Part shown: positions 13,403-63,488 of the stretch, in pieces
Layout of the letters: every line of letters begins with the position of its first letter
Position numbering within the stretch: position 1 is the first letter of the stretch
NCBI RefSeq assembly: GCF_003918875.1
Contig: NW_025767681.1
Location: 1 to 64,000, forward strand
Length of the DNA: 64,000 nucleotides
From: Haliotis rubra
Taxonomy: Eukaryota
Reading direction: 5' to 3'
Notes under the pieces: model-generated
What the model was told of the DNA's origin: nothing
Seen by the model: the letters and a program-made list of their open reading frames with translations, nothing else
Databases searched by the model: none
Position numbers and translations under genes: made by a program

Positions 13403-15829
13403 ACGCGCCGATTTGATTGGTGACTGTTATCATGTCCACATTAAGCATATGATGCTCATGCAGTCAGTCCTTGCCTGGTTGAACATTTACAGACCGAAGT
13501 CATGTCACTACAATATTGCACAGGGCTTAGTTGAACCACAAATGAATACAATTCACAGTCATATTTTATGCTGTTTTGATTACATTATAGATCCACCAGA
13601 CCAGGAAAAGCTCGAAGCTTCATATATCAGTACAGGGGTATTAGCAGGAGCGACAGCAGGAACCTTTCTTCTTATCCTGCTCATTGAAGGGACTGTTCTA
13701 ATTGTGCTGTACCGAAAGGGGTACAGAGTTGGAAACATTCTGAAAGGTACACAATTAATTTCGTGTTGATATATGATTGAACACAGTTTACATGCAGTAG
13801 GTCTTCTCCACGAGGTATCCATGACAAAGCCTACACTATGTGAATCATTGTTTGTCACGATTGTGCATGGTGGCTAAAAAGGGCATTTGTACTACCAATG
13901 TCTGGAATGTATCAATGGTTATATTTCTATCTGCAGTAATTCACAGTACACTGTGTCATTCTCTCTTCTGGGTATGTTTACGGTTGATGTGACATGTTTA
14001 TGTCCGTGTTGCATGTGTTATTTGTGCTTTATCTGTTTTCCAGGAGCTTCACGAAAAAAGGTAATCTAAATGTCCAAGTTCAGTGAAGCAATGCATGGAT
14101 CAGGTAAAAGTAAGGAATAAGGTCGCATTTACAACATGTAAATTTAAAATTACATTTTACATTCTGAAGTGTATCTCCTAATTCCTTAATTGTGTTGCTC
14201 AATTGTTGCAAACTAACCTGTTGATTTTGCAGCTCCAGTCATCCTGAACCTGTGGAAATGGACAACAGAGGATATTCTTCATTAGGTATGCACTGGATAT
14301 TCGATGCTTCACTTTTGTTGAAATAACACTTACCTCTGGATCAGTGAGCACTTAACCATCACAATATGTTTCATCTCTAGGTATGTACAGATTATTGGAT
14401 TTTCCACTTTTGTGATATCTCATTTATCTCTGGATCTGTTAGTACCAAACCATTACGATGTGTTTCAGATCAGATCGCGGCTCCAGCGCAGTATTCAAAC
14501 ATGGAGGAGGAATCAGAAAAACAACAGTACACCCAGTTGAAGATTTATGAAAATACAAAAGGTAGGCATGTCATTCAAAAAAGTCGAATCTCAAGTTCTC
14601 ACATGCATTTACTTGGGAGAAGGAGGAAGTTGTAATTCAACGTTTTGTTATCTTCAGCAGATGATGCAGCTGACAGAAGTACCTATGAGGGCGTGACAGA
14701 GACTCCCCCTGTGACCTATGAGTCCATCAGTGTATGGACATACCAGAACACTGGAGCACATTCTCCAGGTAACCAAACCATGAAACCCTACTGGTGACTG
14801 ATATCTTTTTCATCGTCAAGAAACAATTGTGTCCATACATCTTTGAACATCAGTAATCATCACCATATGCTTTCTCTTCTGTTCCGGTCAAATACGTTTG
14901 TATTGTGTGCTGCTTTCAGTTGGTATCATATTTGTATGTTTGATTACCTTTATTTGTGTTCTTTGCAGGTCTTGACCATGGAAATAACTAACGAAGCACA
15001 CGAGTATACTACATCATAATCGGTTTCAGTTATGGATAAAATATTCGTTCAATCCAGTGCACTACTGCTTTGAAGCAAACGTCTGTGTTATTTTCTTTAT
15101 TTTAAAGCAAGTTCAATCCAAATTAGTTATGGTCGTGTCATCCTTGTCAATTGTATATGATTGAATATTTTACATGCATTAGGTGATCACGTACAAAGAC
15201 ATACGTATATATATGGAGCCAGAAAACTAGAAAATTACTTTGTCAGTTATGACTGATACTGAGCGGACTCAGTCATGGTTCAGGGAAGGAACAGAACAGC
15301 TGGTAGAGCCGATATCCAGTCATACTGGGGTGACTGTGAAACAGAGATGATAGTCTGGTTATCTGCGTGATATGGTGCCGGGGTTGTGTGTAATGCCCGA
15401 CAGAACACTTTCTCATGGTGCCCTGACAACTATACAAGAACTCGGCAATGCTCACAGTGAGGGGCAATCATCTTTATAGGACTCTTATTGGGAGCCTAAA
15501 ACAACATGGGGCACCTAAGGTTTTTGGTGTATCAGATGGATCGCACACGCGCAACTGACAGTTTGTCTTTTTGGACAAGGAATTTGTTACTGTGACTTTC
15601 TATCGTTTCAGATTTGGTGAGAAACTTTCACTGTGACGGTTGATCGGAGTTTGCTATTTCTAAATATATGCATAATTTCATGCATGATTAAAGTGGGGAA
15701 TCAGAGCAAACATTGATTAGTTATTAGTTAAGGATGTTGCATTGAGCAACTGTCACAACGCAAATTTGATTTCACGGACATCAGTTACACAAACAGCTTC
15801 CATCTTTACATTTGGACATCATCCCAGAC

Positions 15830-18530: not shown

Positions 18531-19221
18531 TTTGCGATTATGCATGGAGAACAAATAGTCTACTATTATAAATATGGTAGATATAAAATACTTTGAATGA
18601 AAGGTAGCTCTACGCAGGACATACAGTTGTGACATCAGCATGACACTGCTCCAGTAGCTTATGTTGATAGTGTGTATATGTCAACATCTCGCCTCAGTGG
18701 AAATATTGTACATAGCATAGGCGAGAGAATACCTGTACTTCCTCATACATGCCAAGACTCAGTGATCGTGGTTTCGAAGATAACATTCTATCGATTTTAT
18801 TCCTTTAACACAATGCCCGTGGAATCGGAAATGTTTAAAAATAGGCTTCTGAGACAAATCCAGTTACCGTGCCGTGATGCGGACAATGTGAAGCAATGTT
18901 CTATCACCTACATACTATCGTGTTTTGAAAGAAAGATGACATACCTTCAACCTTTTTCAGTTAATACACAAGTGTTCATCTGAATCATGAAACAGCACTA
19001 TATGTAAAAACTTCTATATTGTTATACAAGATTCAGCGTTTGATACAGTAACAACTGTGATCACACACACACACACACATTATCATTCTGGAAAAGTAAA
19101 AAAGACAGGTGTGTGATCCTTTACATACAAGTATATCTCATTGCCACTCTAAACAATATCCAATATGGTAAACGTTAAACCTACATTCCAGATCTCACCG
19201 CGGTGCCAGACGACAGGAGTG

Positions 19222-22200
19222 ATGAAGACAGTTTGTGCTGCAGTATTATATCTGATGGCAGGTACCTATCACACAATTGTGTAACAGTCTTTAGTCAGTT
19301 TTCTTCTGAATACTCACATTGTTACCGTAAGCGCTTGAGATAAATACATGACAAACAGAGTGTTTCTCTACTGGGAGTGACGTACGGTCCTGCTTCAAGG
19401 AATACTCCCTAAAGAACTAAATATTTTGGTTCTACAGGTGTTGTATCAGGTGCACCCAGTGCCAGTCCAGTGTTGTCTGCAGTGTCTGACACAGCCAGGT
19501 TCAGCTGGGAGATTCCACAGGGAGGTCTGGGGACAGGGAGTAGTTTCTATGCTGTCAGTCCTGCTGGTATCACTGTGTTCCTAGTGACCGGTACTGGGAC
19601 ATTCTTGACCTTTGACACCTACAGAGACAGACTGGTGTACCAGGGGAACATAGCAGCCAGGAATGTCACCTTTACCCTCAGTAACATCCAGACATCCGAT
19701 GCAGGAACATACACCTGTGGGAATGGAGGAGCTAGTACTGAGATACAGAACTGTGGACAGAAACTTGTTGTCCTGGGTGAGTGTGTTTGGTGGTCTGGTA
19801 TAGCCCAGGTCACACATAAGTTGGAGTTAAGAAACTTTGGTCACGGAGAGGCCTTTAATGGGTGACCGAATATGGCAGCTTGACTAATGAGAGTTTCTAG
19901 GACTTCTGCCCTGCCTTACAATGATGCACATATGACACTTATGGTTCCTCCTTAGACAGGTGGCTTTGTTCTATAATACCTCCGCCGTTCACCCAACAGT
20001 ACATAAGAACCTTGGTGGTCAAGTGACTGTAAACCGTATGCCTTACATGCATCCAAAGCTATCATAGGTAATAACGTCTGCTTTTTGCGCATGATGTGTC
20101 CTCGGCGCCAATGATATCAGGCGCTGTACAAATGTACTACACATATGGCTCATATGTATATTATATTCATACACATATACCATTGCCACTGAAAACAATA
20201 TCCCAAAAAATTATAAATTTTAAACCTTTATTCCCGATCTCCTCAATGTGCTAGACGACATTAATTGCGCTTTGAGCATGCACTAGTGTGTGGATTATAG
20301 CGCATAACAAATGGCCATTATTAATAATAAAGATAATTTGCGGTGCACTGTTATACCTAACTGCACATACCTGTAACGCGAAAAGTATAACCACTTTTTT
20401 CTGTCTTTTTTTCCTCGGAACTTTTCTTGAGATAAATGTACTAGAAGTAACATACGGTCCAGCTTCACGAACGACAATTTGAACAACCAAATAATTTTGG
20501 TCCACATGTGTTTATTAGGTACACTCAGTGCCAGTCCAGTGTTGTCGGCAGTGTCTGACACAGCCAAGTTCAGCTGGGAGATTCCACAGGGAGGTCTGGG
20601 GACAGGGAGTAGTTTCTATGCTGTCAGTCCTGCTGGTGTCACTGTGTTCCTAGTGACAGGTTCTGGGACATTTGTCCCCACCACCAACTACATAGATAGA
20701 CTGGTGTACGAGGGGAACATAACAACCAGGAATGTCACCTTCACCCTCAGCAACATCCAGACATCAGATGCAGGGACATACACGTGTGGGAATGGAGGAG
20801 GGGCCAGTAGTGTGATACAGAACTGTGGACAGAAACTTGTTGTCCTGGGTGAGTGGTTATTGAATTAGTTGTTGTTATTCCTGGCTTGTTTCACATCCAT
20901 ATTCATATGGTAAATATAGATATGTGATCTGTTCATCGTAACGTCCATCAAACTATATACGGAAACAAATATAGCTGTCAGTGCATTTGACTTAACTTTG
21001 AACTTTTCCCAATTACGATGAAGGATAAGGCCAGGATATGCATTGTCGGTATCCAGTGAAGAATGTGATCATGAATCAAAGAAAATATATGAATATCAAC
21101 ATAGCTTGAAGGAATTTAATGAGTGTGTTTGCATCATATCTCAGGTACAGGTTATAATCTAATCACGACGGAATAGTAAACAGGATGGTCTTTCTCAAAA
21201 TATGTCTATTATCTCAATCATTGAAATCAACCATCTTGTGTCTCGTCAGCAGTGTTATCTACCGACCTGTTGGGACTAGGTCACATGCCACACTTCTAAA
21301 GGTGAAGTGTATTGAAAACGTTTTTAAGCAATAACATGCAACCGACAAATAATCAAGTAATACCTTGTGTTATGTTAAGAAAGGAATTACGAGTGAATAA
21401 TGAACGAGTGACGTCCCTTACGTTTACGCGTTTACATGAGAAATTCTAATAAGTTCATGTTACAATCGTGTATGTTGTTGCCAGAAACTGCAGAGACACC
21501 CCTGCAGAACTGTATATAAAACTAAAATTTACATCAGTACTAATGCCGAATATTTGATGTGCAAACAATGGAAGTATTTGTGTTTATAGAACTTTACAGA
21601 CCGTTATTGCAATTTGTCATTATGAAAAAGGTAGTATACTCGTTACATATCCACAGAACAATATGTCTCGTGAAGGCCACTTGCTGGAAAATTGTGAGAA
21701 ACCTATCTGTATTATCACCTTTCTGATGTTAGTGGAATATTGCTAAAATGTTATTGAATCACAATCAAGCATTCACCCAACTACCTTTTCATTTTTGATG
21801 TCTTTATTTCTCAATTGCATATAAAAAGCTACATGTTCACGCCCCTAATTTACACATGCACTATTTTGATAGGAAAACCCACGACACCTGGCCGTCCACC
21901 TGTGTCAACAACACCTGTCTACAACCAGTCAGTGACCTTGACCTGCAGCTCCACCGCTACCACAGTCCCAGCTGACCATCGTCTGACCTTGACCTACACC
22001 TGGCAGCGTGACAACACTGACATCACAGTTACCTCCCCTGGTTCCCCCTACACCTTCACAGTGAGTTCAAGGGACAGTCACAGCTACAGATGTAGAGCCA
22101 GAGAAAGTCAGGGTCTGGAGTCCGAGTGGAGCCAGGAGTACAACATGGAACCTCAGTGTGAGTACAGCATGGACATTACGCTGAATATAATCTGTGTGGA

Positions 22201-25200
22201 GTTTTACTACATTCGTGACAGCCACTGCTGTTGCCAAATCATAAATGACGACAGTCTGACAGTTGAGTGCAAGAGAGTCGCAGAGCTACTATAACTGGAC
22301 TGATTGGCTGATGCTCCAATCATCTCCCTGTATACACTGAACCCAGTGTGATTTAATGTGGTGTAGACTGTTTCGTTAATATTACTGATATAGTGTTTTA
22401 TTCCAACTGAATTGTCTTTTCTCTTGAAAGTGTACCGCAGAAAAGCCACCGAACCTGATTTTCACAAATTAGTTCATATTCAAATTATACCAAATATTTT
22501 CGCGGAGACACGTGGATCAAAATATATATTAAAAAGGAGCTTGGTGATTGTCAGCACATTTCGAAAACAGAATAAGCCATGGCCTACATCATTGATATAT
22601 AAAATTAGAATTTGCGAGGCTCAAATAAAAATAGATGAACAAGGTGAATGCAGAGGTATTGTTTCATTTCGTCACACACTCCACAGACGTGAACAGGAGA
22701 AAACGTTCTAACAAAGAAGGAATTGTACAGGAAGAATGAAGATCACATACTCATGGAAACGATCAAGGGAACAAATGAAAGTACAAGTGTTCCTTTATTT
22801 ATTTCGCGAATTTCACACAGGATGCAATACACACCTTGTGAAGAAACTTCAGGATCATGTATATTTTCAAGTGTTCCCAAATTCGTTTCTACGAGTATAT
22901 ATGGATTCACTTACTACGGTACAGCCGACTTTGAGGGAGTCAGCACTCAACCACCTAAAGAAACTGTTAATCACATACTTTTGAATGTGCTCTATCCAGT
23001 CATTTCTATATACCATCAATAGGCTGAAATTGTTGGCTAATATGTATCTCTTCAGACGGTCCCTACCAGATCTCCCTGACCCCCTCCACCTCCTCCTACA
23101 CTGTGACAGAACACCAGGCTCTTCCATCAATCACGTGCTCCGCCCTCTGTAGACCCGGATGTAGCTACAGGTGGTTACACAATGGATCAGTCTTCAGCAG
23201 TGGAGCCGTGCTCCAGGGACAAGCTGACAGATCCAAGACAGGCTTCTACAGATGTCAGCCTTATAATACACACGGGAGTAGTGACAGTGTTACAGTCAGT
23301 GTTGATGTTCAGTGTAAGTATATAGTCTACATTGGTGACAGTGCTACAGTCAGTGTTGATGTTCAGTGTAAGTATATAGTCTACACTGGTGACAGTGCTA
23401 CAGTCAGTGTTGATGTTCAGTGTAAGTATATAGTCTACACTGGTGACTGTATTACAGTCAGTGTTTATCTTCAGTGTAAATATATAGTCTACACTGGTGA
23501 CAGTGTTACAGTCAATGTTGATGTTCATTGTAATTATACAGTCTGCACATAGTGTCAATTTTACAGTCAGCGTTGATGTTCAGTGTACGTATATAGTCTA
23601 CATTGGTGACAGTGTTACAGTCACTGTTGATTTTCAGTGTAGGTATATAGTCTACACTTGTGACAGTGTTACAGTCATTGTTGATTTTCAGTGTAGGTAT
23701 ATAGTCTACACTGGTGACATTGTTACAGTCAGTGCTGATGTTCAGTTTAAGTATATAGTCTACACTGGTGACAGTGTTACAGACAGTGTTGATGTTCAGT
23801 GTAAGTATATAGTCTACACTGGTGACAGTGTTCCAGTCAGTGTTGATGTTCAAAGTAAGTATATAGTGTACACTGGTGACAGTGTTACAGTCAGTGTCGA
23901 TGTTCAGTGTAAGTATATAGTCTACACTGTTGACAGTGTTACAGTCAGTGTTGATGTTCAGTGTAAGTATATAGTCTACACTGGTGACAGTGTTACAGTC
24001 AGCGTTGATGTTCAGTGTAAGTATATAGTCTACACTGGTGACAGTGTTACAGTCACTGTTGATTTTCAGTGTAAGTATATAGTCTACACTGGTGACAATA
24101 TTACAGTCAGTGTTGATGTTCAGTGTAAGTATATAGTCTACACTGGTGACAGTATTACAGTCAGTGTTGATGTTCAGTGTAAGTATATAGTCTACACTGG
24201 TGACAATATTACAGGCAGTGTTGATGTTCAGTGTAAGTTTATAGTCTACACTGGTGACAGTATTTCAGTCAGTGTTGATGTTCAGTGTAAGTATATAGTC
24301 TACACTGGTGACAGTGTTACAGTCAGTGTTGATGTTCAGTGTAAGTATATAGTCTACACTGGTGACAGTATTACAGGCAGTGTTGATGCTCAGTGTAGGT
24401 ATATACTCTACACTGGTGACAATATTACAGTCAGCGTTGATGTTCAGTGCACGTATATAGTCTACATTGGTGACAGTGTTACAGTCAGTGTTGATTTTCA
24501 GTGTAAGTATACAGTCTACACTGGTGACAGTGTTACAGTCACTGTTGATTTTCAGTGTAAGTATATAGTCTACACTGGTGACAGTATTACAGGCAGTGTT
24601 GATGCTCAGTGTAGGTATATAGTCTACACTGGTGACAATATTACAGTCAGTGTTGATGTTCAGTGTAAGTTTATAGTCTACACTGGTGACAGTATTACAG
24701 TCAGTGTTGATGTTCAGTGTAAGTATATAGTCTACACTGGTGACAATGTTACAGTCAGTGTTGATGTTCAGTGTAAGTATATAGTCTACACTGGTGACAA
24801 TATTACAGTCAGTGTTGATGTTCAGTGTAAGTATATAGTCTACACTGGTTACAGTATTACAGGCAGTGTTGATTCTCAGTGTAGGTATATACTCTACACT
24901 GGTGACAATATTACTGTCAGTGTTGATGTTCAGTGTACGTATATAGTCTACATTGGTGACAGTGTTACAGTCAGTGTTGATTTTCAGTGTAACTATATAG
25001 TCTACACTGGTGACAGTATTACAGGCAGTGTTGATGCTCAGTGTAGGTATATAGTGTACACTGGTGACAATGTTACAGTCAGTGTTGATGTTCAGTGAAA
25101 GTATATAGTCTACACTGGTGACAGTATTACAGGCAGTGTTGATGCTCAGTGTACGTATATAGTCTACACTGGTGACAATGTTACAGTCAGTGTTGATGTT

Positions 25201-28200
25201 CAGTGTAAGTATATAGTCTACACTGGTGACAATATTACAGTCAGTGTTGATGTTCAGTGTAAGTATATAGTCTACACTGGTTACAGTATTACAGGCAGTG
25301 TTGATTCTCAGTGTAGGTATATACTCTTCACTGGTGACAATATTACTGTCAGTGTTGATGTTCAGTGTACGTATATAGTCTACATTGGTGACAGTGTTAC
25401 AGTCACTGTTGATTTTCAGTGTAAGTATATAGTCTACACTGGTGACAGTGTTACAGTCACTGTTGATTTTCAGTGTAAGTATATAGTCTACACTGGTGAC
25501 AGTATTACAGGCAGTGTTGATGCTCAGTGTAGGTTTATACTCTGCACTGGTGACAATATTACAGTCAGTGTTGATGTTCAGTGTAAGTATATAGTCTACA
25601 CTGGTGACAGTATTACAGGCAGTGTTGATGTTCAGTGTAAGTTTATAGTCTACACTGGTGACAATATTACAGGCAGTGTTGATGTTCAGTGTAAGTTTAT
25701 AGTCTACACTGGTGACAGTATTACAGTCAGTGTTGATGTTCAGTGTAAGTATATAGTCTACACTGGTGACAATATTACAGTCAGTGTTGATATTCAGTGT
25801 AGGTATATATTATACACTGGTGACAGTGTTACAGTCTGTGTCGATGTTCAGTGTAAGTATATAGTCTACACTGGTTACAGTGTTACAGTCAGCGTTGATG
25901 TTCAGTGTAAGTATATAGTCTAAGTTACAATGAGTGCTGATGTTCAGTGATGGTGTATAATGTGTACACTGACGACATAATTGTGTTATCGTATGACATA
26001 TAACTACAGAACTGCAAGCCTCTTTCAACTAATGTTGATTTCATTGTACAGCCAATACTATGCCAATGAAGCAGTGGTTCACATTTTCAGACCCTGCCGA
26101 CATAAGCATGTTTACCGCCAACTCTCACAGTGGCTCAGTAACAGTTAACGAGTCTGATACAGTGACCTTTAGATGCCAGATTGACAGTAACCCAAGGTCA
26201 GTCATCAGGTTACTGAATGGAACTGGAGAATTGACAAGGGCAGATAACTCCCTGACAGCAGCATACAGACTGGAGTCAGCAGACTGTAGACAAAGAGGGA
26301 ACTACACCTGTACGGCCTCCAACAACGTCGGGGCACCTGTCACCCAGACGGTGGTGTTGCTGGTTAAAAGTAATGTCTTGATATAATGTACGCATCAATG
26401 TCTTGTAATGGTTGTCATTATTCGTTTTTGACATGACTTTTTTAAGGGTATTGAGCAAAGGAAATGCTTCAGGTATCAGTCTTTATTTGAGTTTGAATAT
26501 GGCCTGTTGATCCTGTGAACGTAGAAGTATCGTCACCTGTCTAGCAAATGACTAATACGACCTTATATAACAACATCCGAAGAACGATTTCATTGTCACT
26601 GCTTTTGTATACTGTTGTCTGCATGTAACCAGGTTCTCCACGACTTGATGACTCGGTGTCCCAGCAACTCAAGTTTGCTGCTACTCTGGGTGGTGACGTG
26701 ACTGTGTCTGTGTCAGTCCTGGCCAACCCCTTTCCTACATTCACCTGGAGTAGATCCATCAGCACCAGCCAGGACCTCACTGGTTCCTCCAGCCCTGTCT
26801 CAGACATCTCAGCCACTGCAAGACTACACCTTACTAACCTCCAGCGGCAGGACTTTGGGGACTACAGTCTTTCAGTGGACAATGGTGTTGGCGGTTCAGT
26901 GACATACACTATAAGCGTAGTGGCTGAAGGTTAGTTGCCGATATGTGATCGATCATTCAAGCTTTCAATATTTTGGATAACTGTCTTTAACTGTCGTTTG
27001 TTCACTTTAAGTTCACTATAAGTTTACTTTAGTTCCACAAATACTAAGTAGTGCAAGATTCTAAGATAAAATGATGACAAATAGTTCCGATTAATTTGTT
27101 GCAAGGACCACCAGAGACACCTTCACAGTTTAGAGATCTGGATAATGCAACAACGTCGTCGGTATGGCTGTCGTGGCTGCCTGGGTTCAATGGTGGACGC
27201 CCTCAGACGTTTCTCATTGAGTATCGTCAGTTTGCTACACGAACGTGGACTGTTTATAAGTCTTATGATGACACTGACGAGATGATGGTTGTGGAAGTAA
27301 CTGGGCTTACACCAGGAGAGGTTTACCCATTCCGACTTCAAGCGAGAAATGACTATGGAGACTCTAACAGATATGTCTTCGTAGAAACTACGACTGCAGG
27401 GGGGTAGGTGTCACTTGATGAGAATCACTCAATGGCCACTCTTATTATCGTATGGAACATTCGTCAGCTGCAACAATGAAAACGTATGGATCCCTTAAAG
27501 GAACGATGTGCTCTTTGATCAGATATTCAAATGAAAGAACTCCTTCCTGGTGTGAGCAATGAACCTATGGGTTTCCAAAAAGAAACGCAAACGACCAGAT
27601 AACTGAACAAATATAATTATAATAATTGGGGAATATGTGAAACATTTTTGTGTGTAAATATTAACACAGCGTCATTGATACTGTTTGGAAATGTGAGTAT
27701 GCATAATTAACGAAGATTCGAAAAAATAGTTTGCAAATATCAGTTAAACGTGTTATTTGCTTTCAAAGTAAACATGTATGTCTTGTTGTGGTTGTATGAA
27801 CACCAGGCAGGAGGCCCTCGTGAACTAGGGAACAAATGGTCTTCATGAACCCATGCTTGTTTGTAAACGACGACTAAATGGTTTTGGTGGACAGACTCAC
27901 TGACTTGGTTGATGTAGGCTATCTTGTCACTGCATGGCGTGGTCGAATGTTTACAGCCAGCCGTCATGTCCCTGGTGTAAAGCAGACATCAAACATCTAA
28001 CTTATAACGGAGCTTTATACCTGGTACTCATCTTTAGAAGTTAACCTGTGCCAATTGTATTTTAGCCCATGATCTGCAAGGACAGCAAACTCAAATGATT
28101 AGTTTGTGATCTTGCAAAATATAGTTTTTTACTTGAATGCAACAACGTATGATAAGTAGTCAACTGCAACTGTTATGATAGTTTTCATTACATTGTAGAT

Positions 28201-31200
28201 CCACAAGCCCAGCAAAAGGTCGAAGCTGCATGTACCTATACAGGAGTAATAGCAGGTGCGACAGTAGGAACCTTTCTTCTTACCCTGCTCATTGGAGGAA
28301 CTGTTCTAATGGTGCTGTATCGTAAGGGCTACCGGATCGGAAATACTTTAAAAGGTATATATTTAATGTCGTGTTGTTGAATTGTTATATGACTGAACAG
28401 TATTTACATGCAGTAGGTCTTCTTCAAAACGTATGCTCCATGATTTTGCCTACATACGTCAGTCGTCGCGTGTCAAGATTGTGAATGATTGCGAAGGGAG
28501 TAATCTGTACTGCTAATGTTTGTAATACTATGGTTATGTTATATGTCCCAAGTAATTTACAGTTAACGTTATTATCTTCACTGTCATGTCTTTTTACGTT
28601 TGATTTTTTGTTTCTCGCTGTATGCCGTTTTCTTATTCTTGTTTTTCAGATGCTCAAAAAAGGTAACCTAAACTTCTAAGTTCAGTCAGTAACTTGCAAT
28701 AAGTTAACTACATTTACGTTTTACATACTTGAGGATTTATATTATTAGCCAATTATTAGAAACTGACCTGATGCTGTCTTGTATCTCCAGTCACCCTGAA
28801 CCTGTGGAAATGGACAACAGAGGATATTCATCATTAGGTATGTACTGATTATTGGATATTTGCTTTTGTTTGATATCTCAATATCTATGGATCTAGTAGC
28901 ACTAAATCTCTACACAATGTGTTTCAGATCAGATCACTGCTCCAGCGCAGTATTCAAATTTGGAAGAGGAATCAGAAAAACAACAGTACACACAGTTGAA
29001 GATGTGCGAGAATACAAAAGGTAGATGCATGTCATTTAATAAAGTCTAATCTCAAGTTCTCACGTGGCTGTACTGTCTGTTTATTGGGGCACTTGTGAGG
29101 TTAGTTTTAATTCTAATTTGTTTTGAAATATGTGTTCAATTATTTCTTCAGAGAATGCTGCGGCAGATACAAGTACCTATGAAGGCGTGACAGAGACTCC
29201 CCCTGTGACCTATGAGTCCATCAGGGCATCCCCATACCAGAACACTGGGGCACATCCTCAAGGTAAACAAACCATGAAGCACTCCTAGTGATTGAAACCT
29301 TCGTCATGAAAACACAGTGCCATTTGGAAAATGATCAATTATTACATACATTCATGTTATGTTTGGGATTATACTTGCTCCTCAAGTACAGATTCTAGAT
29401 TTGTTTGCTTGGTATAGAAACAGGATTGGAACCCTCAATCTCAGAGTCAGGTACCTAATCGCCAAGTCAGCAATCTAACCCAATCAGCCACCACAGTGGA
29501 AATCTGACAACTAGTAGTCTAGATCACCGTACTTTGCCGACCCTCAGACAAATATAAATTTGTAGACCTCTGCCTTCGTCTTCGCCATGGATCAACTGTG
29601 TATTTGAACCCTTTAACATGAATACACAGTGCCATTTAGAAAATGATCAATTATTACATACATGTATGTTATATTTGGGATTACACTTTCTCCTCAAGTA
29701 CAGATTCTAGATTTGTTTGCTTGGTATAGACACATCCAGGATTGGCACCCTCATTCTCAGAGTCAGGTACCTAATCGCCAAGTCAACAATCTTACCGATT
29801 CAGTCACAGCGGCTTCCGCTAAAACAGGCACCCATGAAGGGCCACCTCCTCGTGGTGGTTGCTGGGTAACGCTAAGCGCCCTTGAACCCCCGTTGTGGAC
29901 CCGGGGGGATATTAGGTCCACCAACCTGTTTGCCGTGGGTTGCGCCCCTGTGTCGGTGGAGGACGGGATTCTGGTGGTTGAGGGCAAGGGCTCCAGGAAC
30001 AGTGTTCCTTTGCCCAACACACCACTTCGGCCCTTACTTCACCTAGACGGGTGGTTGAACTGGCCCGGTTCAATCAATCGGCTGGTCACGCCGAGCCCTG
30101 TGGTATGCATTTTTGCTATGTCTTGACTCGGTATACTTGTTTTGAATACTATCTGTGTTCATAAAGTTATTTAATATTCTTGCCTAGAGCTCATGCCCAG
30201 AAGGCGGTGGCTCATGGGCCAATCTGGTTTATCCTCTGGATTAACTGGAGTATATCATTTCTGTAACCCTTTGGTGTCAGTTTGCTGGAACACCGCATAC
30301 GTATGACATCGCTCTTGTTGGCGCTCCATGGTGGGCAGGGACCAGATTTGATGAACCAATATACAATTCACTATGGGTAAACAAAATAAAAAAAAAAAAA
30401 AGGGCAACTTTCCGAATCTGATTCTGAGCTTGACTCTGATGAAGATGATGTGGTTACTAAACTGCTATATTCTGAAAGGGATACTTGGCCACGCTTTCTT
30501 GTTCTGGAAGCAAAGGGTGACCGAACACTTGCTTCCTATTCACCATTTGTGTTAGAAAAGGGATTACAAGGTAAAGCAGGTGAGTTGAAAAACGTTACCA
30601 AATTACGGTCTGGAGATCTTTTAGTTGAATGTGTCAGGAAATCGCAGGCAATTAACCTCATGACGTCAACCAAATTAGCTGATATTCCAATTACATGTTC
30701 AGCACACAAGACCCTTAACTTTTCCAAAGGTCTCATCCGTGACAGAGACCGAAGTCTCGCAGATGAATTTGTTGAAGACATTGTATCTCAGCTTAGAAGT
30801 CAAGGTGTCCTTGAGGCCAAACGATTTACATATCGTAAAGATGATCGTGTATTCCCGTCCAACACATATCTTTTGACTTTTGACACCCCGGTTCTGCCAA
30901 CTTCTATTAAGGTTGGATGTTTTTCCATGAGGGTGGATCTCTTTATCCCACGCCCTACTCGTTGTTTTAATTGTCAAAAGTTTGGTCATGGGCAAAATTC
31001 GTGTAGGAATAAATTAGCTTGTTTCAGATGTGGAGAACCTGATCATGATGGCAAAATATGTACAAACACCATCAAGTGCTTACATTGCAAAGGTGAACAT
31101 ATGGCATCTTCAACAGACTGTCCTGTGTGGAAATATGAAGCCACTGTACAGAAATTAAAAACTGAGAAACGACTCAGTTATGTCGATGCGAGGAAAGAAG

Positions 31201-34200
31201 CCAGACTACTTGCACCTGATCCAACACGTCCATCATATGCTTCAGCAGCCAAAAAGGTAACAACTGCATCTATTCTCTGTCAGACGGACCTTACTTGGGT
31301 GAAATCTGAACATCCAAAATCCCTCTCAGAGATTGAACTAAATACAGTAAGTTCCAAACCGGCCACAGATCCAGATAAGTCACCAATAAAGCAAAGAGGA
31401 ACATCTTCAACACAAACAGAGTCAAATCAAAACAAATCGTCAAAATCTACTAAAGTGGACATAAAGAAAAAACAGATTCAATCTGACAGATTGCCAAAGG
31501 CATTAAAAGACACGGTGCAATTCCATAATAAATATGGTTGGCGAATATGGATACTGAAGTATCACATATTATGTGACGCTGGTGGCCATACGCGTGGTCA
31601 CTCACCGAAAAAGAAAGGTAGAGCAGTATCTCCTGTTATTGCTCATAGATAATTACACCGCCATGAGCCATTCCCCTAATCTAGTACAATGGAAATGCAG
31701 AGGACTTGAAAATAACTTTAATGAACTACGGTTGTTAGTTCAAGACTTTTAAACCGTCGGCAATATGTCTCCAGAGACGTATCTTAAACATACTGATACA
31801 TTTGATTTACGGCAGTATAGCTGTTATCATTCATTTTCTCCTCCAGGAGATAGAGCGACCGGAGGTTCGACTATATTGGTTAGACATAACATCATTCATA
31901 GTGATGTTCACCTGAATACCAATCTCAAGCCATAGCTATTCGCCTCAGCCTGCACATTGCGTTTACTCTATGCTCTTTGTACATTCCACCCTCATCTGCC
32001 CTTCGACAAACTGATCTTCAGAATCTCTATGATCAGCTACCAAAGCCCTGTATCATCATGGGCGATTTGAACGGGCACAACCCTCTATGGGGTAGTACAA
32101 GTACAAACAATAAAGGCAAGATTATTGAGGATTTTTATATCTGATAACAACTTGTGTGTGTTTTAATGACGACTCAAACACCTATTTACATCCTGGTACA
32201 GGAACTTATTCTACACTTGATCTGTGTCCCTTGCTGATTCAAATGTCTACAACGAATTTGAATGGTATGTTCATGATGACCTTTGCGGAAGTGACCACTT
32301 CCCAACTGTCCTAAAATCAATCAAACCAGATGATGACCCACCTTTATCACGATGGAATGTTAATAAGGCCAATTGGTCTTTGTATGGAACATTGTGTATG
32401 GAAAAATTAATGACGGAAAATTTTATAAATGTATCAGATCCGATAGAGTTGTTTTCAGCTCAGTTAAATGAAATTGCTGACCAGTTAATTCCTAAGTCCT
32501 CTTCAATTCCTCACATTCGTAAACCATGGTTCAACAATGAATGTAAACAAGCAAGAAAGTGTAGGAAGAAAGCAGAAAAATACTTCCGCAGACATCCTAC
32601 AGTTCATAACTTAAATAATGTTAAAATTACTAATGCCAAGGCACGGCGAGCTTATAAACAAAACGAACGCCAGTCTTGGAGGAAATATGTTTCCAACATT
32701 AATTCGCGCACACCCATGTCTAAGGTGTGGAATATGGTCCAGCGAATAAAAGGCAAAGGCTCCAAGTCTTCTGTTAAACATCTTAAAGAAGGTGATAAAT
32801 TGATAACTGGTAAGTGTGATATTGCCAATAAAATTGGTGAAACTCTTTCCAGAAATTCTTCATCATCAAATTATATCCCTGAATTTCAGAAATATAAAAA
32901 TCGACAAGAAAAAAGAAGAATTAATTTTGACTCTAATAACGGTGAAAATTATAATGAAATATTTTCATTGCATGAGCTACGTACTGCTCTCGAGCAAGCT
33001 CATGATACTGCAACTGGTGAAGACAACATTCATTACCAGTTACTGAAACATTAGCCTGATTCATGTCTTTTGACACTTTTGGGAATATTTGACCATATTT
33101 GGATTTCAGGAACTTTTCCTCCTTCGTGGCACAATGCCATTGTAATCCCCATACCAAAACCTGGCAGGGATCATACAGATCCCTCAAATTACCGCCCTAT
33201 ATCGTTAACCAGTTGCGTTTGTAAAACCATGGAACGAATGGTAAACAATAGATTAGTCTGGTATTTGGAAACGAATAATCTTATCACAAATATTCAGTGT
33301 GGTTTCCGAAAAAACCGAAGTACTATTGATCATTTAGTGCGACTAGAATCCTATGTTAAGAATGCTCTTGTAAATAAACAACACGTAGTATCGATTTTCT
33401 TCGATCTGGAGAAAGCATATGATACTACTTGGAAGCACGGAATTTTGAAGGATTTACATCATTTCGGTTTGAGAGGTCGTTTACCTCTTTTTATATCACA
33501 GTTTTTAAGAGACAGGCAGTTTCAAGTCCGAGTGGGTTCAACCCTGTCTGATCATTATAATCAGGATCAGGGTGTCCCACAAGGCAGTATTTTGTCTGTC
33601 ACTTTATTTAGTGTTAAAATAAATAGTCTTTCTAAAGTTTTAAATGATGCAGTTGATGGATCACTTTTCGTGGATGATTTTAATGTTTCTTGTTGTGGTA
33701 AAAATATGCATACAATAGAGAGGCAGTTACAATTATGTCTTAATAAAATTCATAAATGGTGTCTTGAAAACGGCTTTAAATTTTCTAAATTAAAAACTAA
33801 TTGTCTACACTTCTGTAGAAAATATAAGCCTCATAAAGACCCAGAACTGTTTTTAAATGGCACTCCCATCAAGGTTGTAAAGAGGCCAAATTCTTGGGTC
33901 TGATTTGGGACTCCCATTTAACCTTTCTTCCGCATATTAAATCCCTAAAACTAAATGCCAGAAGGCACTCGATTATTGAAAGTCGTGTCTAATTCAAGGT
34001 AGGGAGGGATCAAGCTACGCTCCTCCACCTTACAGATCACTTGTCCGCTCGAAGCTTGATTATGGCTCAATCGTATATGGTGGAGCCTGTAAAAAGCAAT
34101 TTAAACTCTTAGATTCAGTCCACCACCACGGCCTAAGACTTTGTCTTGGGTCCTTTAGAACCTCTCCCATTGATAGTCTATATGTTGAAGCAGATGAGCC

Positions 34201-36133
34201 TTCTCTTACACAACGCCGTATAAAATTATCTCTACAATACATTACTAAACTATATTCTAGCGAGTCTAACCCTGCATTTAACTGTGTCTTTAATACCCTC
34301 TATGAGGATGTATACAACAAAAAACCTTCTCTTGTTCCGCCTCTTGGGCACAGAATTAAGCCCTTTCTTTCTGCTGCCGGCATTGAGCTTGAAAATATAG
34401 CTCCTTCCCGTCTTCTTTCTTCTCCTCCTTGGCAACTGGTGAGGCCTGAAGTTGACCTAACTCTGACAAAGTTTAAGAAATCTGTAACTAATGAATTACA
34501 ATATAAACAAGAATATAATCAATTAAAAACTAAATATAATACATACAAATCCTTATTTACTGATGGGTCTAAGGATAGTGGCGCAGTGGCATGTGCCACT
34601 GTCATTGGATCAAGAACAATATCTTCCAGAATACCGGATAACAGCTCTATTTTTACAGCAGAAGCAAACGCCATCTTAACAGCTCTTAAATATATTAACA
34701 AACACCGTAAATATAAACAATATATCATCTTTTCAGATTCTCTTTCGTGTCTTCAGGCTATTAAAAATCTTTCTTGCAAACATTCACTTTTATTAGAAAT
34801 TATTGAATTGTACAATGAACTTGCTACTGGCCAATGCGACATCGTCTTTTGTTGTTTACCCAGCCACGTTGGCATTTCTGGGAACACAATGGCTGATATT
34901 GCTGCTAAGGCAGCACTCAACAAATCTGTGACACCACTTCTGATCCCATACTCTGATTACAAAGCTGCTATAAGATCTTATATCCGTGATCTGATGCAAA
35001 AGAGGTGGGACGCCCAAGTAGGTATCAATAAATTACATGCAATAAAACCCTACATTGGTAATACCTACTTGGGTTGTCAGTCCAGATTTGAGGAGGTCAT
35101 TATGCGACGATGTCGCATTGGCCATACCAGATATACTCATGAATATTTATTGAAAGGCGACGATCCTCCGTTTTGTATCCCTTGTGATGAAAGGATCACA
35201 GTCAAGCATGTCTTGCTTGACTGCATTGAATATTCCATCACAAGGGATATCTATTTCACATCCAAAACACTGAAGGATCTTTTTAATAATGTCAGTTCTC
35301 ATTTAATTCTTGCATTTTTAAAAAAATTAGATTTGTTGACTGATTTGTAAATAGGTATATATTTTATTATTGGTAGTTTAGATTAGCAACTTAGATTGTT
35401 AGTGGCTGTACCCTCAAAGGGGGTTGACGTAGCGTAAAATTATTGTCCTCCCGAGGGGGTACGTAAGTCCCAAAACTTTCAAAGTCAATTTAAGTGTACC
35501 TGCTTTTTAATCGTAGAATAAGTGTGTTTTTAATTTATGGCTAGATATCTCTTCTGTTAATGGCTGAAGGGATGGTGTAAATCCAACTAGGGTCCATGCA
35601 GGTAGCAAATGCACTGTAAGTCCCCATGGTCTCTAGTATGGTGATCTACCTTCAGTTGTTGGCGATTTATAGCCCATTTTTACATTGTATAGTCTTCTTT
35701 AATTGGAATGTTTTAGCTTTGTTCGCTAGTTTTATATTGATAGCTGTGATTATCTAGTATTTTTACTGTCCTTCGTCGGCAGGTTTTTTATAATATACAT
35801 ATATTTCATTCTAATATCGCATGTTCTCGTCACAATATGGCTGAAATATTGCCGATGTGACGTTAAATATTAACTCACTCACTCACTCCGCTAAAACAGT
35901 CTAGATCACAGTACTTTGTGGACCCTCTGACAAATGTAAATCTGCAGGCCTCTGTCTTTGTCATCGTCGTGGATCAACTGTGTCCTTGAAACTTTAACAG
36001 CAGTAACTCAGTGTATATGCCTCTCTCCTGGTTACGTATGATACGTTTGTATTATGTCATATGTTCAGTTGTTATCATATGTTTCTTTACTTTTGTTCTT
36101 TACTTTTCAGCTCCTCAGCATGGACATGACTAA
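19222..36133 (+). CDS. Gene B: SP-V-V-Ig-Ig-Ig-Ig(Cys-less)-FN3-TM receptor with ITAM- and ITIM-like tail
   Basis: Exons: 19222-19261 (MKTVCAAVLYLMA), 19438-19776 (V1), 20519-20848 (V2), 21873-22157, 23056-23313, 26091-26369, 26633-26929, 27106-~27403 (FN3; one extra G in a G6 run at the donor relative to gene A), 28199-28354 (TM), 28650-28662, 28791-28837, 28928-29020, 29152-29262, 36111-36133 (TAA). Phases are otherwise consistent. Probable non-coding exon donor at 17917. Confidence 0.85.
23281..25950 (+). repeat. 54-bp minisatellite (~49 copies) made of exon end + donor, unit in frame (CKYIVYTGDSVTVSVDVQ)
   Basis: Unit gtgacagtgttacagtcagtgttgatgttcagt|gtaagtatatagtctacactg; first GT at 23314. 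Confidence 0.95.
29305..29810. repeat. ~313-bp intronic tandem duplication; the second copy is interrupted by the LINE and resumes at 35900-35995
   Basis: catgaaaacacagtgccatttggaaaatgatcaattattacatacat at 29305 and 29618. tctagatcac.gtactttg at 29518 and 35900. Confidence 0.85.
29827..29883 (+). ncRNA. HDV-like self-cleaving ribozyme (minimal P4) at the LINE 5' end
   Basis: P1 GGCACCC/GGTTGCT (G1-U wobble, one mismatch); P2 AAGGGC/GCCCTT; P3 ACC/GGT; L3 TCCTCGT; P1.1 CC/GG; J4/2 GCTAA. G1 abuts the TSD. Confidence 0.8.
30373..31652 (+). pseudogene. LINE ORF1 (gag-like nucleic-acid-binding protein); frameshift in the 5' poly-A run
   Basis: Zinc knuckles CFNCQKFGHGQNSC, CFRCGEPDHDGKIC and CLHCKGEH...C. 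Confidence 0.9.
31663..35350 (+). pseudogene. LINE ORF2 (AP endonuclease - reverse transcriptase - RNase H - CCHC), several frameshifts/stops
   Basis: LVQWKCRG, GDLNGH, SDHFP (APE); YRPISL, DLEKAYD, GVPQGS, FVDD (RT); FTDGSK, AEA, SDSLS, GNTMAD (RNase H); CIPC...H...C. Confidence 0.93.
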
Positions 36134-59401: not shown

Positions 59402-59561
59402 NNNNNNNNNNNNNNNNNNNNNNNNNNNNNNNNNNNNNNNNNNNNNNNNNNNNNNNNNNNNNNNNNNNNNNNNNNNNNNNNNNNNNNNNNNNNNNNNNNN
59501 NNNNNNNNNNNNNNNNNNNNNNNNNNNNNNNNNNNNNNNNNNNNNNNNNNNNNNNNNNNNN
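59402..59561. other. Assembly gap (160 N)
   Basis: Run of N. Confidence 1.
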
Positions 59562-62976: not shown

Positions 62977-63488
62977 ATGCCACGCATATCCTCTGCTGTT
63001 ATATTCTATGTCATTACAGGTACGTCTTTAAGATGGGCCATATTTGTACAGTATACGTACCTGAATTGGATACATATTACCATATTTGTGATAAATATAA
63101 CGTGAAAAACAGACGCGGCTTGGGACGACGTACTATCCTTCATTCTTAATACACAAATACCTTTTACATGTATTGTATTAAGAGCACCCAGTGCCAGTCC
63201 AGTGTTGTCTCCAGTGTCTGACACAGCCAGGTTTAGCTGGGAGATTCCACAGGGATATCTTGGCTGACAGTCCTGCTGGTGTCAATGTGTTCACAGTGAC
63301 AGCCCCTGGGATATTCGTCAGCTTTGGCAACTACGGAGATAGACTGGAATACCAGGGGAACATAGCAGCCAGGAATGTCACCTTCACCCTCAGCAACATC
63401 CAGACATCAGATGCAGGGACATACACATGTGGGGCTGGAGGGGCTGCTACTGTGATACAGAACTGTGGACAGAAACTGGTTGTCCTGA
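62977..63488 (+). pseudogene. Gene D 5' part: intact signal exon plus a gene-B-type V exon with damaged acceptor and frameshift; continues beyond the window
   Basis: 62977-63019 MPRISSAVIFYVIT|gt. V exon ~63182-63488 is homologous to 19438-19776, with a net 20-nt deletion after EIPQG and the homologous AG changed to AA. Confidence 0.8.

Follow-up and report, generated by a model that had tools for sequence, protein, structure and literature searches.

Does the second of two tandem V exons in an abalone receptor gene encode a working domain, or is it an unused copy? The question is raised by a stretch of 64,000 nucleotides of Haliotis rubra DNA (contig NW_025767681.1 of assembly GCF_003918875.1, positions 1 to 64,000 of the forward strand; hereafter the window), in which a cassette consisting of a leader (signal peptide) exon and an exon for a V-set immunoglobulin (Ig) domain occurs twice within one gene. 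We confirmed the tandem occurrence of this cassette, with a dead second leader and an intact second V exon (V2), and we lean towards the reading that V2 is a used internal exon, spliced in as a second outer V domain. The gene corresponds to H. rubra XP_046555515-17, which map onto the window at 95-100% identity, and the database proteins nearest to the V2 exon are from Haliotis. RefSeq already contains the gene, tandem V model included, as unnamed predictions; the literature searched gave no description of the family, and the duplication itself is ordinary exon duplication.

The duplicated leader and V exon

Alignment of the two units and direct reading showed that a segment of ~0.67 kb is present twice, the copies being spaced 1.07 kb apart; the initial annotation had taken the spacing for the size of the unit. 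Homology begins ~85 nt before the leader exon, runs through that exon, the intron and the V exon, and ends at position +7 of the V exon donor, so that unit 2, aligned to unit 1, extends over 20180-20856. The features of the two units are the following.

19138..19221, plus strand: upstream part of unit 1, 75% identical to 20180-20326, and colinear with the sequence that lies upstream in the H. cracherodii gene
19222..19261, plus strand: live leader (signal peptide) exon, with ATG at 19222-4 and a phase-1 donor GT at 19262-3; 100% identical to XP_046555515 residues 1-14
19262-19437: leader-V intron of unit 1 (direct reading)
19438..19776, plus strand: exon V1, encoding a V-set Ig domain and in phase 1 at either end, with the canonical family acceptor CAG at 19435-7; it ends at 19776, not at 19777 as annotated before
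19799..20050, strand not assigned: repeat resembling a short interspersed nuclear element (SINE) in the spacer between the units; 639 candidate copies, 72-85% alike, and very high summed DNA depth
20180..20326, plus strand: upstream part of unit 2, where CCG (20234-6) replaces CAG and 60 nt have been inserted (20260-20319)
20327..20366, plus strand: dead leader copy; the start codon reads ATA (20327-9), the donor GT has become AT (20367-8), and identity to the live leader is 70%
20367..20518, plus strand: copy of the leader-V intron in unit 2, with CAT at 20505-7 in place of the canonical family acceptor and an in-phase AG at 20517-8
20519..20848, plus strand: V2 exon, an intact V-set domain of 109 codons, phase 1 at both ends, with donor GT at 20849-50

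The three losses previously described in the second signal exon were borne out, namely CAG to CCG, ATG to ATA and GT to AT, and the insertion of 60 nt comes in addition. A conserved CAG (19189-91), which precedes the ATG by 30 nt, is the putative acceptor of the leader exon, as the initial annotation had read it. V2, in turn, was indeed found open throughout its 109 codons, its AG at 20517-8 is in phase with the phase-1 donor of V1, and its own donor fits the consensus. The V1 and V2 exons are 91.2% identical, with a single in-frame 3-nt indel. The leader copy matches its counterpart at 70% and the intron at 63%, and all 5′ non-coding sequence taken together at 67.9%, with five gap events (Fisher P=1e-12 for exon versus non-coding). 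The leader copy was not better conserved between the units than the intron (P=0.46).

The cassette of ~0.67 kb (from -85 to +7 of the V donor) would have been duplicated in tandem, after which the repeat would have filled the junction between the copies. Now redundant, the downstream leader would have decayed at the neutral rate, while the downstream V exon would have been kept as an internal exon, the phase-1 donor of V1 joining the in-phase AG that lies 12 nt inside the old V2 exon; the receptor would thereby have gained a second V domain. The direction and the mechanism of the duplication are what we infer from the flanks. The first intron bases after the V2 donor are typical of the family, whereas V1 departs from the family after +7, and the sequence upstream of V1 is colinear with that of the closest H. 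cracherodii gene found, which has a single V exon (91% identical to V1 and 88% to V2). A tandem copy of the cassette predicts exactly this combination of a colinear upstream side and a family-typical downstream side.

Two other models were considered and not adopted. A plain 1.07-kb tandem repeat does not account for the spacer of 394 nt, which contains the SINE-like repeat with its at least 639 candidate genome copies: the tail of the spacer matches neither the intron downstream of V2 nor the sequence upstream of unit 1. A gene fusion by deletion, with V2 native and the signal peptide and V1 brought from another gene, was raised since the V1 upstream region matches that of the paralogous V exon L012 better than that of V2, and was set aside on the colinearity with H. 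cracherodii and the family-typical start of the V2 downstream side. The two units are not mutual closest relatives: the upstream region of V1 is closest to L012, and the silent sites of the V2 exon are closest to another paralog, L004. We attribute this pattern to neutral decay of the non-coding part of unit 2 and later conversion of the exon, although unit 2 could conceivably derive from another paralog.

Evidence for and against the use of V2

To place V2 among its relatives we searched the 1.38-Gb H. rubra genome for V exons in six frames, and found 18 close V exons (61-100% amino acid identity) on five contigs, plus more distant copies. V2 keeps 28 of the 28 residues that are invariant or near-invariant in the family, and its private changes amount to seven substitutions and one codon insertion, other paralogs having 2-18 substitutions (the divergent L016 excluded). 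Between the V1 and V2 frameworks there are three non-synonymous and six synonymous differences, with a ratio of the proportions of non-synonymous and silent differences (pN/pS) of 0.17; neutral drift of V2 would give ~10 non-synonymous framework differences (P at most 0.01). The frameworks of V2 are constrained, while its leader has decayed like an intron. This is the pattern expected of a used exon that has no further need for a leader of its own.

Every other close paralog uses the family acceptor yCAG followed by GTGTTG (yCAG followed by GTGTTGTATCAG). In V2 the canonical CAG is CAT, so only the in-phase AG 12 nt further in remains. The predicted junction from V1 to V2 would then be CTGG followed directly by GTACACTCAGTGCC; the junction for tandem use is also given as CTGG followed by GTACACTC. 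All three predicted proteins (XP_046555515/6/7) read KLVVLG joined to TLSASP, that is, V1 joined to V2 through the AG ending at 20518. The initial annotation had proposed that V1 and V2 are used in tandem or as alternatives. Tandem use is what the three predictions contain, and it has precedent among distant paralogs, although no RNA junction was seen for either arrangement. Among the close V copies, V1-V2 is the only tandem pair. V-V pairs do exist in distant paralogs, one of them in this genome, where a 52-nt phase-1 intron separates the two V exons; among H. asinina proteins, both V-V and V-Ig-V layouts occur. As a separate observation, L012 (G000:C2791:221318-221647) has lost 1 nt between its canonical acceptor and the start of the V frame, and could be in phase only via an internal acceptor, TCAG followed by GT, as in V2; the inner AG would then be a recurrent alternative acceptor of the family.

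Three runs, X1-X3, were guessed to be RNA from their coverage of exons only, and may come from a related or sister species. The variable segment of V2 is unique in the reference genome (the next best match is 89%), and two of these RNA-like runs, which otherwise cover exons only, contain low-depth contigs that match it at 97% identity. V2 had been open to the objection that it might never be transcribed; a V2-like variable segment is present in the RNA-like material, but no V1-V2 or V2-Ig2 junction of this gene was seen there. Contigs in X1 and X3 also join another leader (ending in TGTGTGATTGCAG) to a V sequence that matches V1 exactly over the first 86 nt (19435-19523); they may come from a paralog whose V exon has the same 5′ part, or from an alternative leader upstream in this gene.

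The V exons appear to exchange sequence. Silent divergence (pS) between V1 and V2 is 0.15 as compared with a non-coding divergence of 0.32 (P=0.003), and between V2 and L004 it is 0.073, though their upstream regions and introns are unalignable. Of the informative site pairs, 46% failed the four-gamete test; a PHI-type test, which looks for recombination with spatial structure, did not reach significance, so what was detected is homoplasy without resolvable tract structure. That silent sites are far more alike than introns, taken with the four-gamete failures, points to exon-limited gene conversion as active among the V exons. We propose that purifying selection and such conversion would together hold the frameworks of the ~18-member family near-identical, many silent sites included. 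The earlier observation that flanking introns are more diverged than frameworks stands, but the silent sites are more alike than the introns as well, a pattern that points to gene conversion limited to the exons beside selection on the protein.

The next family member in the window provides a dead exon for comparison.

63172..63488, plus strand: D-V, the broken V exon of the next family member, with 20 nt deleted, a TGA in frame at 63265-7 and CAT as acceptor

D-V had been used as an intact comparator, and has turned out to be a pseudo-exon. Its deletion sits after CCACAGGGA, and its canonical acceptor has changed from CAG to CAT, as in V2; the close relative of D-V that is intact, L009, lies on a different contig. 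The D-V leader still looks intact (ATG at ~62978, donor at ~63021), and the remainder of that gene lies beyond the end of the window.

Several of these results weigh against the use of V2. Its canonical acceptor is lost, a change that the initial annotation had missed, and the RefSeq models that join V1 to V2 are themselves predictions. In unique introns the RNA-like runs depart from the reference by 5-9%; no V1-V2 or V2-Ig2 junction of this gene was found in the three of them, all their V-Ig2 junction reads carry paralog sequence, and two of them did not show the variable part of V1. In H. cracherodii, the closest gene found has one V exon. Finally, the closeness of V2 to L004 at silent sites and the frequent four-gamete failures enter here too, because conversion alone could keep an unused V2 open. 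V2 may, then, be an unused pseudo-exon in the V1-Ig2 intron, its frame preserved only by exon-limited conversion from working paralogs, and RefSeq may include it merely as an open stretch that happens to be in phase. We regard both propositions as unlikely, if seriously to be reckoned with. They are favoured by the loss of the acceptor, which V2 shares with the dead D-V, by the death of the entire V2 leader, by silent sites nearer to non-neighbouring paralogs than to V1 alongside introns that cannot be aligned, by pervasive mosaicism among the V exons, and by the lack of junction reads in the RNA-like runs; a word search with the V1-V2 junction peptide likewise found no protein fragment in public collections that spans the V-V junction. 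Against them, D-V in the same cluster has acquired a frameshift and a stop and was not rescued, which argues against conversion being sufficient. Moreover, the first 20 nt of V2, by the old acceptor, have diverged and yet keep a clean pyrimidine tract and the in-phase AG, and the V2-specific variable sequence is found in RNA-like contigs while the unique intron sequence flanking it on both sides is not.

A third arrangement would have V1 and V2 serve as alternative cassettes (V1 alone, V1-V2, possibly V2 alone), so that one gene would present different hypervariable tips. All exons are of phase 1-1, and any combination would be in frame; the V2 acceptor departs from the canonical one of the family and may be a weak site; and runs X1 and X2 show a V2-like variable segment without that of V1. 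No isoform evidence was found, however, all three public predicted proteins have both V exons, and short contigs from a family of ~18 or more copies are not assignable to genes (those in the RNA-like runs are 90-97% alike and come from many paralogs). We consider alternative use improbable, and keep V2 as a probable internal exon in our working model.

Variability and selection across the V exons

Selection was analysed on 15 distinct paralogous V exons. The A-B, E-F and G strands are nearly invariant among them (RNVTFTLSNIQTSDAGTYTCG is identical in 14 of the 15), and the BC loop proper (IPQGGLGTG) is conserved, while up to eight different residues per column occur in C, C′, C″, D and the FG loop. 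The peptide differences previously listed for V1, V2 and D-V in the C′-D region and the F-G loop were correct, and the focus of divergence on these regions extends to all 15 paralogs.

Codon likelihood models (in-house GY94-type code, F3x4, optimised branch lengths) gave an overall ratio of non-synonymous to synonymous rates (omega) of 1.0 under M0. M2a was strongly preferred to M1a (log likelihoods -2099.4 and -2159.1; likelihood-ratio statistic 119.6), with an omega2 of 6.0 on 15% of sites. The sites with posterior >0.8 are residues 34, 35, 44, 45, 51, 54, 56-60, 62, 95 and 98-100 of V1. In the variable partition, with a partition-specific tree, omega was 1.76 (P=2e-4 versus 1) and M2a was preferred again (statistic 76), whereas the framework partition gave an omega of 0.34 and no positive class. 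Nei-Gojobori means agreed with this (dN/dS of 1.2-1.4 in the variable part and ~0.3 in frameworks). Without a tree, pN/pS of the variable part was 1.15-3.4 in seven of the eight pairs tested, and individually significant only for L004/L006 (P=0.02), which are 93.6% identical upstream (intron divergence, K, ~0.066) and have a variable-part pS of 0.08 versus a pN of 0.25.

The sites fall on a predicted fold. An AlphaFold2 model of the V domain (pLDDT 86.8) is a V-set sandwich that includes C′ and C″ strands, its nine strands being residues 11-13, 19-24, 36-39, 45-49, 55-57, 65-67, 75-80, 89-95 and 101-111. The best structural matches are the V domains of nectin, CD200, MPZ and T-cell receptor delta (Z 11.8-12.4); immunoglobulin heavy-chain variable (VH) structures match at a TM-score of 0.63-0.73. 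Placed on the strands of this model, the selected sites lie at the end of the BC loop, the CC′ turn, the C′-C″ hairpin, the C″-D stretch and the FG tip, that is, at the free edge of the predicted GFCC′C″ sheet and its top loops. These variable sites may form a ligand-binding face. No paralog has a cysteine in strand B (ARFSWE), so the canonical disulfide from strand B to strand F is absent. Cys93 in strand F and Cys105 in strand G (V1 numbering) are invariant and flank the FG loop, and a disulfide between them, across the FG hairpin, seems plausible from this conservation.

Diversifying selection across the family is well supported by these results, with the caveat that heavy mosaicism can inflate likelihood-ratio tests. 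The initial annotation had proposed such selection from V1, V2 and D-V; the proposal holds for the family, but not for the V1/V2 pair alone, whose variable-part pN/pS of 0.79 shows no excess of non-synonymous change and counts against it. For the two regions singled out by the initial annotation, a tree-free test on 12 paralogs unseen by it gave a dN/dS of 1.28 (bootstrap P=0.10), with 0.59 in the rest of the exon, a result that also weakens the support for positive selection.

Alternatively, the focused variability might reflect relaxed constraint combined with patchy conversion from divergent donors. In keeping with this, silent divergence too is higher in the variable part (0.24-0.30 versus 0.10-0.13), the out-of-sample test fell short of significance, and recombination inflates M1a/M2a tests (a point reportedly made by Anisimova and colleagues in 2003). 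Relaxed constraint alone, however, fits poorly with the rejection of M1a, which already has a neutral class, in favour of an omega2 of 5-6, with the L004/L006 pair, in which the variable pS is close to the intron divergence and pN far exceeds both, and with pN/pS values above 1 in all but one of the pairs. We judge it rather unlikely, and favour the view that positive selection would have driven apart the C-C′-C″-D stretch and the FG loop.

The predicted receptor and comparison with known systems

Downstream of V2 the remaining exons were located by protein mapping; exons were searched singly, with the public predicted proteins standing in for the spliced model.

21873..22157, plus strand: Ig2 exon (C2-like)
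23056..23313, plus strand: Ig3 exon, also supported by an RNA-like joint
~26093-26374: Ig4 exon
~26611-26931: Ig exon without cysteines
~27102-27401: FN3 exon
~28198-28353: transmembrane exon
~29145-29270: tail exon

The RNA-like joint is the GT..AG junction 22157-23056 between Ig2 and Ig3, present in X3. The best profile-search match, XP_046555516/7 (750 aa), clusters with XP_046555515 (857 aa), and both come from a 375-kb H. rubra contig. Pfam recognized two V-set stretches, Ig_2, Ig_3 and I-set domains and one fn3 in the protein. V-set (PF07686) scored 48.3 bits over two stretches of the whole protein, P0152, above the gathering cutoff of 26, and 24.5 and 22.5 bits, slightly below it, on the single V exons. 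No fibrinogen domain was found by Pfam, which sets the protein apart from FREPs, and the layout of six Ig and one FN3 is not that of Dscam or turtle (PF25059 scored 31.4 bits against a cutoff of 39); these names on NCBI models are automatic labels. After the transmembrane segment, the P0152 tail contains sequences of the type (I/V/L/S)xYxx(I/V/L), characteristic of ITIMs (immunoreceptor tyrosine-based inhibitory motifs), and several YxxL; VTYESI and STYEGV in this long-isoform tail are ITIM-like and thus putative inhibitory motifs. On balance, the gene appears to encode a single-pass receptor of the immunoglobulin superfamily (IgSF) with the layout signal peptide-V-V-Ig-Ig-Ig-Ig-FN3-transmembrane, followed by a tail with tyrosine motifs.

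Other features were seen around these exons. An 18-aa cytoplasmic stretch (XP_046555515 residues 765-782) has its 100% match at 14231-14284, upstream of the gene and not between the transmembrane and tail exons; either a neighbour has an identical tail exon, or isoform X1 borrowed the exon. A 54-bp minisatellite at 23281-25920 (L027 16205-17014) has grown from the 3′ end of the Ig3 exon and its donor, with a GT donor in each copy. The array is also present in the H. cracherodii gene. DNA and RNA-like contigs laid out on the window show many length variants at the start of the array, and a sister array in gene C was flagged separately in the initial annotation. A long interspersed nuclear element at 29827-35347, with open stretches of 420 and 456 aa, adjoins the last exons of the gene, and a run of N occupies 59402-59561.

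Among 1.84 billion representative sequences, all named full-length matches to the V domain were Haliotis proteins, other hits matching only the generic E-F motif of multi-Ig proteins, and no sequence homology to a named vertebrate ITIM-receptor family (Siglec, CEACAM1 or LILR type) was found. Two clusters from anonymous transcript assemblies share the V signature. One such protein, P0140 (840 aa), has the same layout and signature (no strand-B cysteine; C...DCGQxLVV) and carries the ITIM-like LIYAEL and VNYETI, so the superfamily may reach beyond the named Haliotis species. Within H. rubra, L013 and L014 (G000:C353:132746-133072 and 139020-139346) lie 6.3 kb apart and are identical at every nucleotide; the cause is a segmental duplication of very recent date or a duplicate made by the assembly. 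An exact look-up of one paralog protein found nothing on record.

Lineage-restricted, fast-evolving IgSF receptor families (CEACAM/PSG, KIR/LILR, FREP, Alr) are the usual raw material of recognition of non-self or of partners. We know of no such family described in abalones, and abalones are absent from a 2025 review of invertebrate IgSF proteins (PMC11999971). The family may, speculatively, constitute a diversified recognition system (immune, allorecognition, or for gametes or settlement), in which conversion shuffles C′C″D and FG patches among ~18 V exons and this gene stacks, or optionally includes, a second hypervariable V, giving two tips per receptor; we hold this to be improbable on present evidence. 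Abalones are farmed animals in which viruses and bacteria cause mass mortalities, and they are a classic model for the rapid evolution of recognition proteins. The locus would offer a dated snapshot of the gain of a second V domain, by duplication of a cassette, death of a leader and a shift of an acceptor, and the sequence comparisons would provide a list of candidate contact residues.

The abalone family resembles several known systems in part. The mammalian CEACAM/PSG families likewise form a tandemly expanded IgSF group with a fast-evolving N-terminal V-type domain lacking the canonical disulfide, C2-type domains after it, some members with a transmembrane segment and ITIM tail, and both exon or domain duplication and gene conversion among paralogs. 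Beyond the Ig fold, however, there is no detectable sequence homology, and the FN3 domain and the invariant cysteine pair flanking the FG loop are abalone features. The Alr genes of Hydractinia (PMC9546547; PMC11999971) are also an invertebrate, lineage-restricted IgSF cluster of dozens of genes, with unusual V-set-like tip domains that vary, tyrosine signalling motifs and pseudogenes. Hydractinia belongs to another phylum, and allorecognition has a genetic basis in it, whereas the abalone family is known from sequence alone. An oyster NCAM1-like receptor (PMC11841013) has a similar general layout of three Ig domains, FN3, transmembrane segment and two ITIMs; it is described without a hypervariable multicopy V domain, and its abstract mentions no tandem V duplication. 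The FREPs of Biomphalaria (PMC11999971) are, like the abalone family, a molluscan multigene IgSF family; at the N-terminus they carry one IgSF domain or two in tandem, and point mutation together with recombination or conversion has diversified them. FREPs are secreted and end in a fibrinogen domain, whereas the abalone protein is predicted to be a membrane receptor with FN3, a transmembrane segment and a tail of tyrosine motifs.

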